Positions 3,645 to 11,100 of a stretch of DNA of 61,339 bases are shown here, piece after piece; position 1 is the first letter of the stretch, and every line of letters begins with the position of its first letter. The notes under the pieces are model-generated. The model saw only the letters and a list, made by a program, of their open reading frames with translations, was not told the origin of the DNA and did no database searches. The position numbers and the translations under genes were made by a program. Origin of the DNA: Polymyxa betae A26-41 (taxonomy: Eukaryota; Protista; Endomyxa: Phytomyxea); NCBI GenBank assembly GCA_003693705.1, contig RBZT01000774.1:1-61339 (forward strand), given 5' to 3'.

Positions 3645-4492
3645 CTGGCTGGCTGGCTGGCGGCTCTGCATGACCAGAACCGTCGCGGCTGGCGCAGGCG
3701 GTCCCAGACTGTGGGCCGTGTGCGGGTGGGGGGGGGGTTACCACCAGCCAGTGCCCCTGTTGAGTGTGACCTCCACCCCACCACCACCACACCACCACCC
3801 CATTACCCCACCACACCACCTCCAGCCGACGGTCCCAATAACGCGTCGGCTGGCGGGCTGCGGGGCCTGTGGGGTGGTGTTCGAGCTGGGCGTCCCGACA
3901 CTGCATTGGACATCGTGTGCTGCTGGCCTTGCCTGAATTTGGTTGCTATGAGAGTCGCGTGGTCGGGTAGAGGCTATCAGGCGATCATCATCGTGGCAAT
4001 TTAGTTGCGCAAACGGATCGTCACGCACGAGCCTCGTTAACAAAAAACGCAAGGAAACTTCAAAAACATTTCACTTTGCGAATCTAATCACTTTGATAAA
4101 TTATGATTTTTGTAGTTTATGTTTCGAAGGGAAATCAGCATTGACATGCCTCTGTAAGGGCAAAATCCTGAACCCTAACGATAACCGATCGCAGGCAGAA
4201 AAACGCAACTTGCGAATGACGGTTAACGCCAAAGAAATTGACCTTCGAAAACCATAACCTCATTGTTGGACCTTTTCCGCGTCACACACTGCTTCTCTCT
4301 CTCTACCGCAACATTACACTTACTTGATGTAACATTACACGCCAGGAACCTCTGTCGAAGAAGTTTCGCCTTCGGCCGAACATGATGGAAACGGCAAAAA
4401 CCCCGTGGCAGATCAATCACTGGCGATCGATCGGTCCCGGACGTTCAAGGCATCCGAAAGTTCTGGATAGATCGATCACTCATCATCCATCA

Positions 4493-7400
4493 ATGATTGC
4501 CAACCTCAACACAGCCGCCGCCTTGCTGGTGGTACTGGGCCTAATCGCCGCCGGCGCCCTGGCCAACAACAACGACGACGACATCAACGACGCCGTACTG
4601 GACTCGGAAACGCGCGCCCTCATTCACCTCTTTACCCAGACGATTCCTGACTGGTGCGACCAGAACCGGCAGTTATTTTTCCTTTTTTTTGTGTAAAAAA
4701 CGACAAGAGTTTTTTGTCATTTGAAAAACTTCAAAACTAGTTCAATTCCATTTTTCGGCGATGTTGTTCGCGACGGAATCGTCTGATTCGATTGCAGGAC
4801 GAGAGGGCCGCCGAACAAGACCCAGGAGCGCCACTTCTTCCGGCAAGTGTATACTGGCCCCTACGTCAAGAGCACGCAGGCGGACTTCCTGCACTGCACC
4901 GACACGAGCCCGAACCCCTCCACACAGTACAAGAATTTCTCGCGCGTTCTCGGACGCATCGACCTGGCCCTGGGCCGGCACGACCACGACCTGGGTGTGT
5001 ACGGCCGCCTGTTCGACCTGGCCCGCGGCTATTTCTTCGACGGACCGGATCTCGAGTTGACGCGCTGGCTGTGCCGGGCCGTACAGGCCCCCGACCAGGA
5101 TATCGCGCTGCTCGGGGCGCGCCTGGCCCAATGCCTGCCGCCGTCGTGGGCCGCGGGCCTGTACGACGCCCGCGCTGCGGACGAATCGAATTCCGTTCCG
5201 TTCGAGGGCCCGTCCGTGCTGCTGGCGATGGTGCTGTCGCCGTATTCGCCGCGAATGGCGGAGATCGTCCATGAGCTGGTCGAGACGCTGCCCGAATGGG
5301 TCCGCGACCAACCCTCTCTGCATCTTCACGATCTATTGCATGAAATTATTTGGTAACGAATTTGGTCTTTTTGCTTTGAAACGGAACTTTTTTTCTTGTA
5401 TTTTTACATTTTTTATAGTCGAATCTGCTCCTGTTTTTGTCGCAATTTACGACTTTGTGTTTTTTACGCAATTTTCGACGTTTTAGGCCATTTTCACTTT
5501 TCTGGTTTCAGATTCGACTTTATCTTGGACAATATTTTCGATGTTTGTCATTGCTGATTGATTGTCGTCTGTAGGGCGGATATCGAGAATAATGATACCA
5601 TCATGGCCTTAATCAATCGAATGCGTCCTGAGGATGTCGACGTGGTTCTGAAACGTGAAAGTCAGGTTCCGCTCTATGAATGGCTGCAATATTTTACGAT
5701 GCATCTGGTCCGCGGCATTCAAGATGGACGACTCGATATGGCCAAGCTCACGAGAATCTTCGCCAGATTTGATGACTGCCCGAAACGATCGAATCAGTTT
5801 TATATCTGCGCTACCATGCAATGGAATGTCGATTGGATTCGCGACTTCCTCTGGGAACAAACTTTCAATTGTCGCGAGTAAGGAGAATACGCATTTTTCT
5901 CGAATTGAAAAATCAAGTTTTTTCTGTTCTGGAAATCTTGTGGTTTTATTTTGTGAGGGCAGTTTGCTTATCAATGTTTTCGAGAAATACTTTGAAAGTT
6001 TCTATCGATTCCTGCTTTATGAAGAAAGTTTTCCTTTTTTTTCGTTTCGATTTTGTTTTCTGAAAAACACTTTAAAATTTTTCCATTTTTTAACTTTTAA
6101 GGAAAAATTCACTGTTCTCTCTATTTAGCGTTTCAGGACATTATCGTGTCTTGGTTGCGTACTGACCCAATGGGTTCTGTCTCATAGTGTCCCGGATTGG
6201 ATCTGCGTCGAGCTTGTGAGCCGCTGGAAGCGAAGCATCGTCGTCGCCGACGACTTCCTGTCGACCCTCTCTCAGCCCAGCGACGCTGCTGTCCAGTTCC
6301 GCCATTACCTCCTGCCCGAATGGTAACGTTAATTGGTGTAACGTTGCCAGGACATGCGGGCTGATGCGATTGGTTTGCGCAGGTTGAAATACCAGAAACA
6401 GCAGCAATGGTCGGGCATGACCTATTCGATGCGCGAGGTCACGATGTTCACGTGGCTCTTCTATATGATCTGTAACGTGGAACTCGATATCGTAACGTTA
6501 ATTGGGCGCGAGGACCCCGTCTCGCCGTCCGATCGTTCCGCGGCCGATGCCCTGCGCACGTTATATACGGCGCTGGCGACCGAGTAAGCACGCCAACTGT
6601 CCCAACGTTAGGGATTAGGGTTTCTCACCGTTCTGCAGTCTATTGGATGCGTGCTATCCGCGTCTGATGGTCCCGATTGATCTCAGCCCGACCTACCTCT
6701 TGCCGTACTGGCTCATGCGGGCCAGCCGTTCGGACCTCGAGAACGAATGTGACTGGCGCGGCCGCAACCTCAATTGCCTGGCTTGCGCGCTGATCTTCTT
6801 AACGCTGCAGACCACCCACGACACTGTCGCGGACCTGCTGCCCATGCTGAAACGTGTCAGCAACGTTACCGAAACGCTCGGCGACGCAGCCCCGTTCTAC
6901 GGGCCCGTCCTCGGTTCGGCGCCCGACGCAATCGGGATCGTGGACCCCAACCAGGTCGCCGTACTGGCTCTGCTCCATGACCCGGACCTGCGTCACGATG
7001 CCGACACGCGCAAGCTGTGCCAGGCGCTGGATGCGCTGGCCCCGGACGCGGTCCGGACGCTGACCTGGTTCGCATCGGAGCCGTCGTTGTATCAGTCGAC
7101 CATGCGGGTGTATCTGGCCCAGACCATCATGGCCCTCGAAACGGGTAATGCTGCCCCAGCCCCCTTCTGTTGTTGTTGTGCTGATTGCGTTTGTGCGTAG
7201 CGAATTTCTGCTACTCGTTGATGGATTGTATCGTTCCAAAGAAACAGAATCGGGTAAACGCACTTTTAATAATGTTTGTACAATTTTCTGGTTTTTTTTG
7301 TATCCAAACAACCAAAATCTGGAATTTTTTTTCTATTAATCAAGATTAATTGGTCTGAAATATTTCAGTGAAAGTTTGTTGTTATGCGTTTAACAGTTAA

Positions 7401-7783
7401 CTTGAACAATTTTATTGCATCAAACAATTCTGGTCATTTTTCATCTGAAATTCTGGAGAATCATCATAGTGTAAAAGCACTTTGCATTTTCTGAATGGTG
7501 TTTGCAGAAGAGGAAAAAGGACGACCTTCCATCATGCGCTGTCTGCCTCAACTCGGTGTTCGGTTCTACCAAGACGGTTCGTCTATCGTGTGGTCACCTG
7601 TTCTGTCTGGATTGTATCCAGGCATGGTTCGTCATTAAAGACTCCTGCCCCATGTGTCGTCAGCGACATGTTCATCAGCTGTCTAGGACGCGATTCATCG
7701 AGATGGTTGATGCCAGGATGCAGCTACCTGCTGATTGGATGTACTGGCCTTCAAATTGGCCGCGAAGAAGAACGGAGCAATAA
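4493..7783 (+). CDS. Secreted RING-HC (C3HC4) E3 ligase-like protein, 8 exons, about 752 aa
   Basis: Exons 4493-4671, 4798-5352, 5575-5877, 6137-6322, 6383-6583, 6639-7144, 7201-7253 and 7508-7783 splice in frame via GT-AG. Signal peptide MIANLNTAAALLVVLGLIAAGALA; basic PKKQNRKRKK; RING CAVC...CGHLFCLDC...CPMC. Confidence 0.75.
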
Positions 7784-8114
7784 ACTTATATTGTATCTTG
7801 CTTATCACGAACACATCTCAGGAACCCTGAACTCAAACAATTCGATCTTCTTTAGAGCTCCTGGACGCTTGATCTTCGCTTGGTTTTCGGACCTGTGCTG
7901 CTATGTCGTTTCGTAAGGTTTAATAATATCGTAGAGCAGCAAATTCAGAAAGACAGTTGTTTTATTCTGATAGTAGGACAATAATCACAGATTCCGGCGT
8001 TTCGCAGAGACTCAGGAGAAACGTCAAAACATATACTTCTATAAAACATTCCGAATTACAATGACCAAAATAATTCTTGAAAGGCTGAATTTGTTGAGCT
8101 TTGAAAACTTGTTG

Positions 8115-11100
8115 TTAAAGACTTGCCGTTCCAGACAGCTTTACGTTCTCAACACGTTCCCCGCCTCTTTCTAAACGAAGCCTGGAACGTTTAGTTTCTA
8201 TATCCGGTTGAAATTCCCCGCGTTCCATATGGTAAACAGAGCGTGACAGATATTCCGGCGTGTATGGATGCTTTGGGAAGCGTAGCTGTAAAGGGGATTC
8301 CACGGCGTCTTGGATGAACTTCGCCTTTAACAAATCTGAAGAGCAATAGCGCTTTGACGCATTTCGGTTCAGGAGCCGTCTCAAAAGATAAGTGACTTCT
8401 TTTGGGGCACGAGTTCGTGACAGATCAAGTTCGCCATTCTTCGCCTAAGCTATTGTTAAGTTAAATGCCAGAGCAACGGACATGTCATACAGCGTTGACA
8501 TCAGCCAGAGTTGATTCCGGCGTTAATAGCCGATATAGTATGGCACCAACGCTCCACATGTCGCATTTTGGACCGATACGACCACCTTCCTCGACCTCCG
8601 GGGCTATAAAAGATCGGGTCTCGTCATCTAATGCCGAGACGAAAAACTTCCTCAGTCCGATATCAACCATCTGCACAGTTATTGGTCGAAAAGACACTGC
8701 AGTGAAGGAACAAAAAATCGGGGAAGCCATAAATTCAATTCAACGGAGGCAAATCACTCAAACGTAACTAGATTCAAAAGTTTGAACTTTTCAGGGGAGT
8801 GAAAACAGTTAGATGGTACAATCAAAAGCATTGCAGCAGCTCTGACCTGAATGCGATGCTTTCGTAACGATTCCAAGCATAATACGATATTAGCAGGTCC
8901 GAACGCTCTGAGACAGCATTAGAAGACAGCATTCATGTACCAAGTGTCACACCCGAGTATCATTCCTTGACTATGCAAGAACCTCAGCCCAGAGATGACT
9001 TGGCGCATGATCAGAGCCACAGTATTCAGTGACATGATCCCTCGAGCGTTAATAATTTCATCTAAGCGGACCCAATCTGCAGGTGATTGAGAGAAATCCA
9101 AGATTAACCCACAACCAACGGAAAGACCATCCAAACATCAACAAATATTAAGACTCCTAAGAAATGGGCACTTACTTGGAATGTAAGGTCTCAAAATATA
9201 GATTCTGTCATTGTCTTCATACAAGGCCGCAGATTTCGCAATGTTGTGATCATCAACGAAGCGAAGAACCCCGGATTCGATTCGCAGCGTGAGCAAATCA
9301 GAATCTTTAACCACTATTGTAACACATTTAGAAAGGCGTTCGTTGAAAGCAAATGTACAAACTGATCTTGTCGATGTACTTCATCATATAGTGCTGGCCG
9401 GTATACGCTCCTTTACACTCGAACACATTAGGAAGGCAGGGGTGCACTACACTGCTAATTTGATAATGCTCCTGTGAAAAAATTCAGAATTACATTGCTT
9501 GATTAAACCATATGAAACGAACAAACATGAAAACCGAGCAAAATGCGACTACTCAAAGAAAAGAGTAGAGCACAATCCCTTCAGAGATGAGATATTTGCC
9601 TAGATTACAGCGAAAGACCAAATTAGCCTGTAAAATTAAAATTGGCCAATAGTACCGGTAGCTTAAAGTCTCTCGAAGCAATACGAATCGCTTCAACCCA
9701 TCGATCGCGTTGCTCAGCAGTGTCCAGGTAAATGATACGAGTAAGACGGGATATTGTTGACACAATCTGAAAAGCGAATTGCGCCCAATGATGACTCCTG
9801 CCATTGGAAATATAAGGATTGTCATCATCTGCGATCGGGTTGCAGATAGCTCCATGCAGTGACAGGACAATATTCGGTTTCGTCGACGACTGCCTATGGT
9901 ACGAGTACAGCATATTGTTGCTGATGACCACCCAGCGACGCTTCAAGCGCTGCAGACACCAGATGAAACCACATCGACAAAACAGCAAAAGCTAAATGGG
10001 AACAACTGCAAAGAGGGAAATTATAGGAGAGATTACGTAACATAAGAAACTGTAGGGCTTGGCCTCGTTCTGTCATAACGGGGCCTCCTTTAATGTGAAG
10101 GAGTCCCTTTGAAATGGGACTCTCATAACCTACTTTCAGAAACCATGTCTGCTTATAGACGTAACCTTGCATCGAGATGCAACTCAGATCAGCGCTGCTC
10201 GAGCGGCCGTCGTCGGAGCTCAGTTCGAAATCGCACATGCATGGCGCTTTTCCTTCAGCATTCGAGCTTTTAAAAAAGTCGGAAGATGATCGCTCATTGA
10301 TCCTGTAGATCAGGGTCTGAATGCACATCACGGATGCTGCCTAATCATTTACATACCACGATTGGGCGGCTACTGCCTCATCATTGGAGGCGAAGCTTCC
10401 TTTTGGTGGCCCGGAGACCCTGAGAAACTGTCAAATTTTCACGAATAACACATTACACTTCGCACCAGAATTCAGGGAATAAAAATCGATGCAGGTATTT
10501 GAAAATTCTTCGTCTTGAGCATGTTTCAAAGAAGTCGACTCCATGAAACAACCCCTCTGCGAAGCTTGGAATGCCATCAGGCTGAGCTGTGTCATCAGGA
10601 AGGTCTCCCGGAATCTGCGAAAAAGGAGAAGGATCGCGGCAATCACGAAGCCACTTTGCAGGATTCACAGCAATATCAAGGACGAAAGCTCGAAGCCCTG
10701 TGAAAGTATCATGGCTATCGACCTGGAAAAGTTGACTTGCACGAAAGAAAAAGGACGAGGACCATCACCAGCTGAACAAGGTCAGTGAATGATATCCGAT
10801 CACTAAAGCTTCGGTCCGATTTCTGATTTAGGAGAGCATCGACAGTTTCTTTCACCTAGGTACAGGGGCATGAGACCGAAGAAGCAGATCTCGTAGAGAG
10901 TTGACGAAAGCTCAACAGAAAGCCAAAGAAAAAAGCAGCAGCAGACGAAGACAGAACTTCGTTCTTGAGATGAAGTTATAACGATTGTCATACCTTAATC
11001 TCAGTGATCATGAGATAGACGGCATTATGGACATCGACTCCCATTAAACTGCAGGCACAGTCTATGACCAGATCGACAATATGGATATTCTGGCCGATAG

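Follow-up and report, generated by a model that had tools for sequence, protein, structure and literature searches.

Secreted RING E3 ubiquitin ligases have been described in the plasmodiophorid Plasmodiophora brassicae. PbE3-2 of this species is a secreted, active E3 that acts on host RD21A (Li et al., Plant Physiol 2024; bioRxiv 10.1101/2022.10.26.513834), and PbRING1 (PBRA_000499) is reported to have a functional signal peptide, by a yeast invertase assay, and E3 activity in vitro (Yu et al., Curr Genet 2019). Secreted RING proteins had been placed among the P. brassicae effector candidates in 2015, with SPRING of Trypanosoma cruzi named as the precedent (PMC4471660); as cited there, SPRING, a protein with a signal peptide and a RING, is reported to reach the nucleus of the host cell (Hashimoto et al., Cell Microbiol 2010). 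Here we examine a gene of comparable design in Polymyxa betae A26-41, located at positions 4493-7783 of a stretch of 61,339 nt (contig RBZT01000774.1 of assembly GCA_003693705.1, positions 1 to 61,339 of the forward strand), hereafter the window, to which all coordinates refer. P. betae is an obligate intracellular plasmodiophorid that parasitizes sugar-beet roots and transmits beet necrotic yellow vein virus, the agent of rhizomania. The gene is expressed, and we interpret its product, with about even confidence, as a secreted helical/RING E3 ligase acting on host proteins, that is, as a candidate effector.

The gene lies on the + strand and consists of eight exons separated by seven GT..AG introns, a structure on which transcript contigs of two independent studies agree. 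Logan contigs from two runs, X1 in study P1 and X2 in study P2, were placed on window positions 4100-8300; these contigs, which carry no library record, derive from RNA, since they are spliced. All seven joints were present in both runs, with zero mismatches to the window, and they delimit introns at 4654-4797, 5353-5574, 5878-6187, 6323-6382, 6584-6638, 7145-7200 and 7254-7507. A single X2 contig of 2157 nt covers 4510..7767 across all seven introns; therefore, the signal-peptide exon and the RING exon are carried on one mRNA. The raw RNA runs X11 and X16 yielded 0 reads, a result that bears neither way on this structure. From the ATG at 4493 the exons total 2190 nt, that is, 729 aa plus the stop codon at 7781-7783.

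An initial annotation, made from the sequence alone, had proposed that a 53-nt exon (exon 7, 7201..7253) joins the signal-peptide gene in frame to a downstream RING-HC exon. The transcript contigs bear this out at both junctions, 7144/7201 and 7253/7508, and the small exon is entered in phase 1 and left in phase 0. Retention of intron 6 would stop the frame at the TAG at 7198-7200; no contig of X1 or X2 keeps this intron and the read depth in that bin fits complete splicing, so that transcripts ending at this TAG, the alternative raised by the annotation, were not found. Other features also lay where the annotation had placed them, except that exon 1 ends at 4653 and not at a later GT, and that the first base of exon 4 is 6188 (X1 and X2 share the joint 5877/6188). 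The joints thus place the acceptor of exon 4 at 6187/6188 rather than at an in-frame AG further upstream, at 6136. Across the gene region, GC-rich open stretches alternate with AT-rich or short GC-rich gaps with GT..AG ends. Introns 1-5 are all in phase 2, followed by one in phase 1 and one in phase 0.

Several features of the gene structure are recorded here as observations in their own right. Intron size and composition are bimodal, with three introns of 55-60 nt (GC 0.52-0.54) and four of 144-310 nt (GC 0.29-0.38). The GC content at third codon positions (GC3) is mosaic as well, at 0.76-0.82 in exons 1, 2, 4, 5 and 6 and 0.53-0.59 in exons 3, 7 and 8. At three of the five phase-2 introns, a Trp codon (TG|G) immediately preceded by [ILV]P[DE] is split, and five copies of a short motif, [ILV]P.?[DE]W, are spread along the protein, one of them in the tail that follows the RING.

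The RING end is encoded by exon 8 (7508..7783), which begins with KRKK (7508-7519) and continues with the RING-HC (7535-7657) and a conserved tail (7661-7762). The annotation had called this a RING-HC exon, and it does encode a complete C3HC4 finger, with the spacing C-x2-C-x14-C-x-H-x2-C-x2-C-x10-C-x2-C and all 8 zinc ligands (exon 8 residues 10-50), located at residues ~648-688 of 729. Several Pfam gathering cut-offs are passed: zf-RING_2 (E 2.7e-12, 47.2 bits against a cut-off of 27.3), zf-C3HC4 (31.2 against 21) and zf-C3HC4_3 (33 against 27). The best sequence matches of this RING in the PDB were active RINGs, namely those of RNF4, RLIM, Arkadia/RNF165 and RNF13. In the alignment with RNF4, read by eye, there is a V between C1 and C2, a W after C6, a P after C7 and an R after C8; in RINGs generally, E2-contact and linchpin residues occupy such positions. 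The tail beyond the finger is family-specific and ends in LP.DW.

At the other end of the protein, exon 1 (4493..4653) encodes a predicted signal peptide, then an acidic stretch and a D.ETR.L..LF motif. By hand criteria the signal peptide spans 4493-4564 and comprises 24 aa, with an n-region of 7, an h-region of 12 and the c-region AGALA; cleavage is predicted after A-L-A (positions -3..-1), with G at -4 and the acidic run coming next. This N-terminus is the sole transmembrane-grade stretch of the protein, with a Kyte-Doolittle 19-residue maximum of 2.18 (computed per exon), whereas the next-best window reaches 1.54 and holds E and D. No second transmembrane segment was found by hydropathy exon by exon, with junction-crossing segments judged by eye, in agreement with the annotation, which had seen no clear transmembrane segment. 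Nor was an endoplasmic reticulum-retention end of the KDEL/HDEL type found: the C-terminus reads ...RRRTEQ and the ends of the paralogs are likewise not KDEL-like. As a side observation, the motif D.ETR[RA]L[MI][RH]LF (4595-4630), ~10-40 residues past the predicted cleavage, is better conserved throughout the family than the rest of exon 1 and resembles an RxLx export motif, its fifth residue being R or H instead of E, Q or D.

Between these two ends lie exon 2 (4798..5352), exon 3 (5575..5877), exon 4, ending at 6322, exon 5 (6383..6583) and exon 6 (6639..7144), all delimited by transcript joints. No Pfam match was found in exons 1-6, even at E 1, and a profile of exon 2 found no family relative, so that the ~600-aa middle which the annotation had called unrecognised stays so; its best-conserved part is exon 2, and exon 6 forms a second conserved block. 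The predicted structure of exon 2 contains helices only (AlphaFold model; predicted local distance difference test, pLDDT, 64; predicted template-modelling score, pTM, 0.63). Fold searches with Foldseek, VIA-align and ESM-Atlas shape all placed ARM/HEAT-type solenoids first, the top-ranked matches being the SARM1 ARM domain, beta-catenin, Pds5, coatomer and HspBP1, at scores under the significance bars of the tools (Foldseek against the PDB, best E 0.24; VIA Z <=6.8, under that tool's own bar for helical proteins; ESM-Atlas TM <=0.51). The exon 6 model, with a mean pLDDT of 45, was too poor for a fold search. Neither Pfam nor HMMER with hhalign nor the fold searches gave a significant ankyrin, ARM or HEAT match, blastp found no significant internal repeats in the protein, and the ESM-Atlas feature search with exons 2 and 6 returned scores of 0.83-0.89, which is the chance range. 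Judging from the exon 2 model, the middle region is probably an alpha-solenoid, a common protein-binding scaffold, an assignment that we make with low confidence.

The window gene belongs to a family. Six-frame searches of the P. betae assembly (1001 contigs, 27,085,814 bases) with exons 2, 3, 6 and 8 recovered one and the same collinear set of family loci, ~10 in all. Contig C83 holds five loci, one of them a fragment, in a tandem cluster with both orientations (L020-L023); C360 holds one complete locus (L025) and a second RING at the contig end; C201 and C655 hold one locus each, the latter with a stop in exon 2. A distant relative at C221:11412-12455 (L027) shares an exon 6-like block and the post-RING tail, and in it a RING-H2 (C-x-H-x2-H) replaces the RING-HC. 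The common layout is a signal peptide, a helical region, a small exon and a RING. The N-termini of the paralogs read MPTRTVLVLATLLAVVWRQSVA and then FNESS, which has the form of a textbook signal peptide. Such a signal peptide stands at the very start of six of the seven copies examined, exon 1 of the seventh being frameshifted. Most paralogs have no upstream in-frame ATG. Damage was seen in some copies: the locus at ~32 kb of C83 carries a frameshift in exon 1 and a stop codon in exon 6, and the one at ~16 kb has a Cys-to-Ser change at the second zinc ligand. A 370-aa open frame on C360 (exons 2-3), which had been considered as an intron-free reference, gave no Pfam match and was rejected, as it runs through an intron-like F/N/L-rich stretch.

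Within the family the window gene is the outlier, with 39-51% identity to the paralogs in exon 2 (48-51% over residues 10-117) and 33-39% in exon 6. Pairwise Nei-Gojobori ratios of nonsynonymous to synonymous substitution (dN/dS) among close paralogs were 0.6 in exon 2, 0.84 in exon 6 and 0.39-0.44 in the RING exon; by these sequence comparisons, the RING end is under constraint, and the body evolves rapidly. The small exon is kept in all paralogs at 50 nt, against 53 nt in the window gene, with its first 13 codons conserved. Between tandem copies, this 50-nt exon and its intron flanks are ~98% identical, and neighbouring exons only 75-85%, a pattern pointing to gene conversion acting locally or to a very uneven distribution of constraint.

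A profile of exon 2 searched with HMMER against 1.84 billion cluster representatives retrieved no family member and no plasmodiophorid protein. There was no self-match either, and therefore no product of the family, from any assembly, is in that collection, which was built from public genomes and probably includes the proteomes of P. brassicae and Spongospora. The sole profile match was a 2252-aa ankyrin-repeat protein (E 1.5e-6, over 5 stretches); hhalign gave it 3%, and this lead was rejected as an artefact because the score was summed over repeats. Alignments of exon 2 and exon 6 found no relative in the JGI metagenomes. As far as these searches reach, the family has so far been seen in the P. 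betae genome only. No publication on P. betae effectors was found in the literature searched.

The reading that we favour would work as follows. The gene would give a precursor of 729 aa consisting of a cleavable signal peptide, a ~600-aa alpha-helical region, a short basic patch and a RING-HC with a family-specific tail. Plasmodiophorid plasmodia live inside the host cell, and for this reason default secretion would put the RING near host E2 and ubiquitin: the default secretory route would carry the protein out of the plasmodium, which is intracellular, and into the root cell of the host, where the RING would recruit host E2~ubiquitin and the fast-evolving helical region would select host proteins for ubiquitination, in the manner shown or supposed for PbE3-2 and PbRING1 in P. 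brassicae. Gene model, expression, domain content, family and rate pattern are established by the data presented here; that the signal peptide is cleaved, that the protein is secreted and active as an E3, and that it acts in the host is what we infer, and the inference is strengthened by the family expansion, the pseudogenes, the raised dN/dS and the published precedent in the sister genus. The annotation's proposal of a host-delivered ligase is thus plausible and has support at the level of the family, namely its expansion, dN/dS and precedent, while it still goes beyond what was observed.

Several points weigh against this reading. The transcripts come from two studies whose runs are not tied to infected roots; the signal peptide was called from hydropathy, from rules applied by hand and from the paralogs; and a cysteine-rich, zinc-dependent RING must survive the oxidising secretory lumen, a passage that is possible, since PbE3-2 makes it. 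The start codon also bears on the matter. The annotation's N-terminal signal has the textbook signal peptide of the paralogs on its side, but the annotation overlooked an in-frame ATG pair at 4382/4385 (ATG ATG, 4382-4387), which has A at -3, a good context, and no stop before 4493, and which lies inside the 5′ untranslated region (4319..4492, + strand; record 1 of X1 begins at 4319, the reach of the contig). A start at 4382 would set 37 residues ahead of the hydrophobic stretch, with the core beginning ~44 residues in, where it may become an anchor. The product would then be a signal-anchored type II membrane protein, uncleaved, with the helical region and the RING exoplasmic, in an organelle lumen or on the plasmodium surface; the uninterrupted apolar run of 17-18 residues would suit this, and the net-positive N-flank and strongly acidic C-flank favour the N-in orientation. 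Against the anchor stand the A-L-A preceded by G, a good signal-peptidase site, and a minimal upstream open reading frame (ATG TAA, 4327-4332), 50 nt upstream of the ATG pair, that could favour re-initiation downstream. Moreover, most paralogs begin directly with the signal peptide, and GC3 steps exactly at 4493 from 0.49 in the untranslated region to 0.81 in exon 1; for these reasons 4493 is the more likely start, though unproven. We therefore regard the anchored protein as unlikely, and such a form on the plasmodium surface would still face the host cytoplasm.

The destination of a secreted ligase within the host cell is a separate matter. The last 6 codons of exon 7 (7236-7253) encode PKKQNR and the first four of exon 8 KRKK, and, as the annotation had noticed, the splice joint 7253/7508 itself builds PKKQNR|KRKK just before the RING; transcript joint and exon translations agree on this. 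SPRING, which on the secondary account in PMC4471660 has a signal peptide and a RING and is reported in the host nucleus, offers an analogy for carriage to the host nucleus by this patch, whose KRKK fits the monopartite nuclear localization signal (NLS) core K-K/R-x-K/R, with PKK alongside. Yet the same junction reads ...DQINQ and then APDEE(G/D)P in 7/7 paralogs compared, which is acidic. The patch thus appears private to the window copy and not a property of the family, although it may be a genuine acquisition; short basic runs beside RINGs are common. The core that the annotation took for an NLS is present, but nuclear targeting would depend on one lineage-specific patch, and we keep a nuclear destination as a weaker sub-hypothesis, possible but rather doubtful. 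Two further explanations dispense with the host altogether. Most RING proteins are cytosolic and the genome holds >40 RING matches, so the gene could encode an ordinary housekeeping E3 of the parasite cytosol whose N-terminal hydrophobic stretch has no targeting role; this is most improbable, given a signal-peptide-like N-terminus that holds its position and character in paralogs otherwise 50-60% different, and a family that is genome-restricted, multi-copy and fast-evolving, unlike housekeeping E3s. Alternatively, the family may be in decay, with genes transcribed into proteins of little or no function. Several paralogs have stops, frameshifts or a lost zinc ligand, and a dN/dS of up to 0.84 in exon 6 together with pseudogenes is also compatible with a decaying family; nevertheless, the window copy has an intact frame across its 8 exons and all RING ligands, contigs of both studies are identical to it, and selection on the RING exon is purifying across the family. 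Decay is accordingly a very improbable account of this gene.

The gene model, verified by transcripts, and the ~10 signal-peptide/RING loci, whose variable region is recognition-like, provide candidates for a hijacking of host ubiquitin such as has been demonstrated for PbE3-2 in clubroot. A bolder scenario, which we consider quite unlikely, is that P. betae possesses a genus-specific, tandemly expanding and diversifying family of secreted alpha-solenoid/RING ligases whose oldest member, the window gene, gained an NLS and ubiquitinates sugar-beet nuclear proteins. If true, SPRING of T. cruzi would have a plasmodiophorid counterpart in this protein, which could prepare root cells for the parasite as well as for the viruses that the parasite transmits.

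Compared with known systems, proteins of the PA-TM-RING (RNF13) and ZNRF3/RNF43 types likewise combine a signal peptide, which in the P. betae protein is predicted, with a large domain on the N-terminal side and a RING at the C-terminal end, and the RINGs of RNF13 and ZNRF3 were among the PDB matches. In PA-TM-RING and ZNRF3-type proteins, however, a transmembrane helix between the ectodomain and the RING keeps the RING cytosolic, whereas by hydropathy (by eye for the paralogs) the P. betae protein and its paralogs have no such helix before the RING, a region that holds E, D, N and Q. SPRING is likewise a secretory RING-finger protein of an intracellular parasite and embodies the same logic as the initial annotation, but it comes from an unrelated organism, and the NLS of the P. 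betae protein is a candidate only, and unconserved; we know of no sequence relationship between the two. Closer at hand, PbRING1 and the putative secreted E3 ligases of P. brassicae represent the same concept in the same parasite order; the P. betae genes form a multi-copy family with tandem clustering, a difference from PbRING1, which was compared by description only. Like the P. betae protein, PbE3-2 comes from a plasmodiophorid and lacks a transmembrane segment; it too has a RING toward the C-terminal part, a body with no annotation and, predicted in the P. betae case, a signal peptide at the N-terminus. The two differ in the RING, which in PbE3-2 is a C3H2C3 (RING-H2) around residue 423 and in the P. 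betae protein a C3HC4, and homology of their bodies is unlikely by the exon 2 profile search, PbE3-2 being known here by description. The annotation had argued that a signal peptide joined to a RING makes little sense other than in a host-delivered ligase; as new reasoning this does not hold, secreted RING E3s being already a described class. To the secreted RING E3 effectors already known, the P. betae gene adds a different RING subtype on an apparently unrelated body. Two plasmodiophorid lineages would thus have secreted E3s built on seemingly unrelated bodies, and their comparison would show whether this strategy arose repeatedly.

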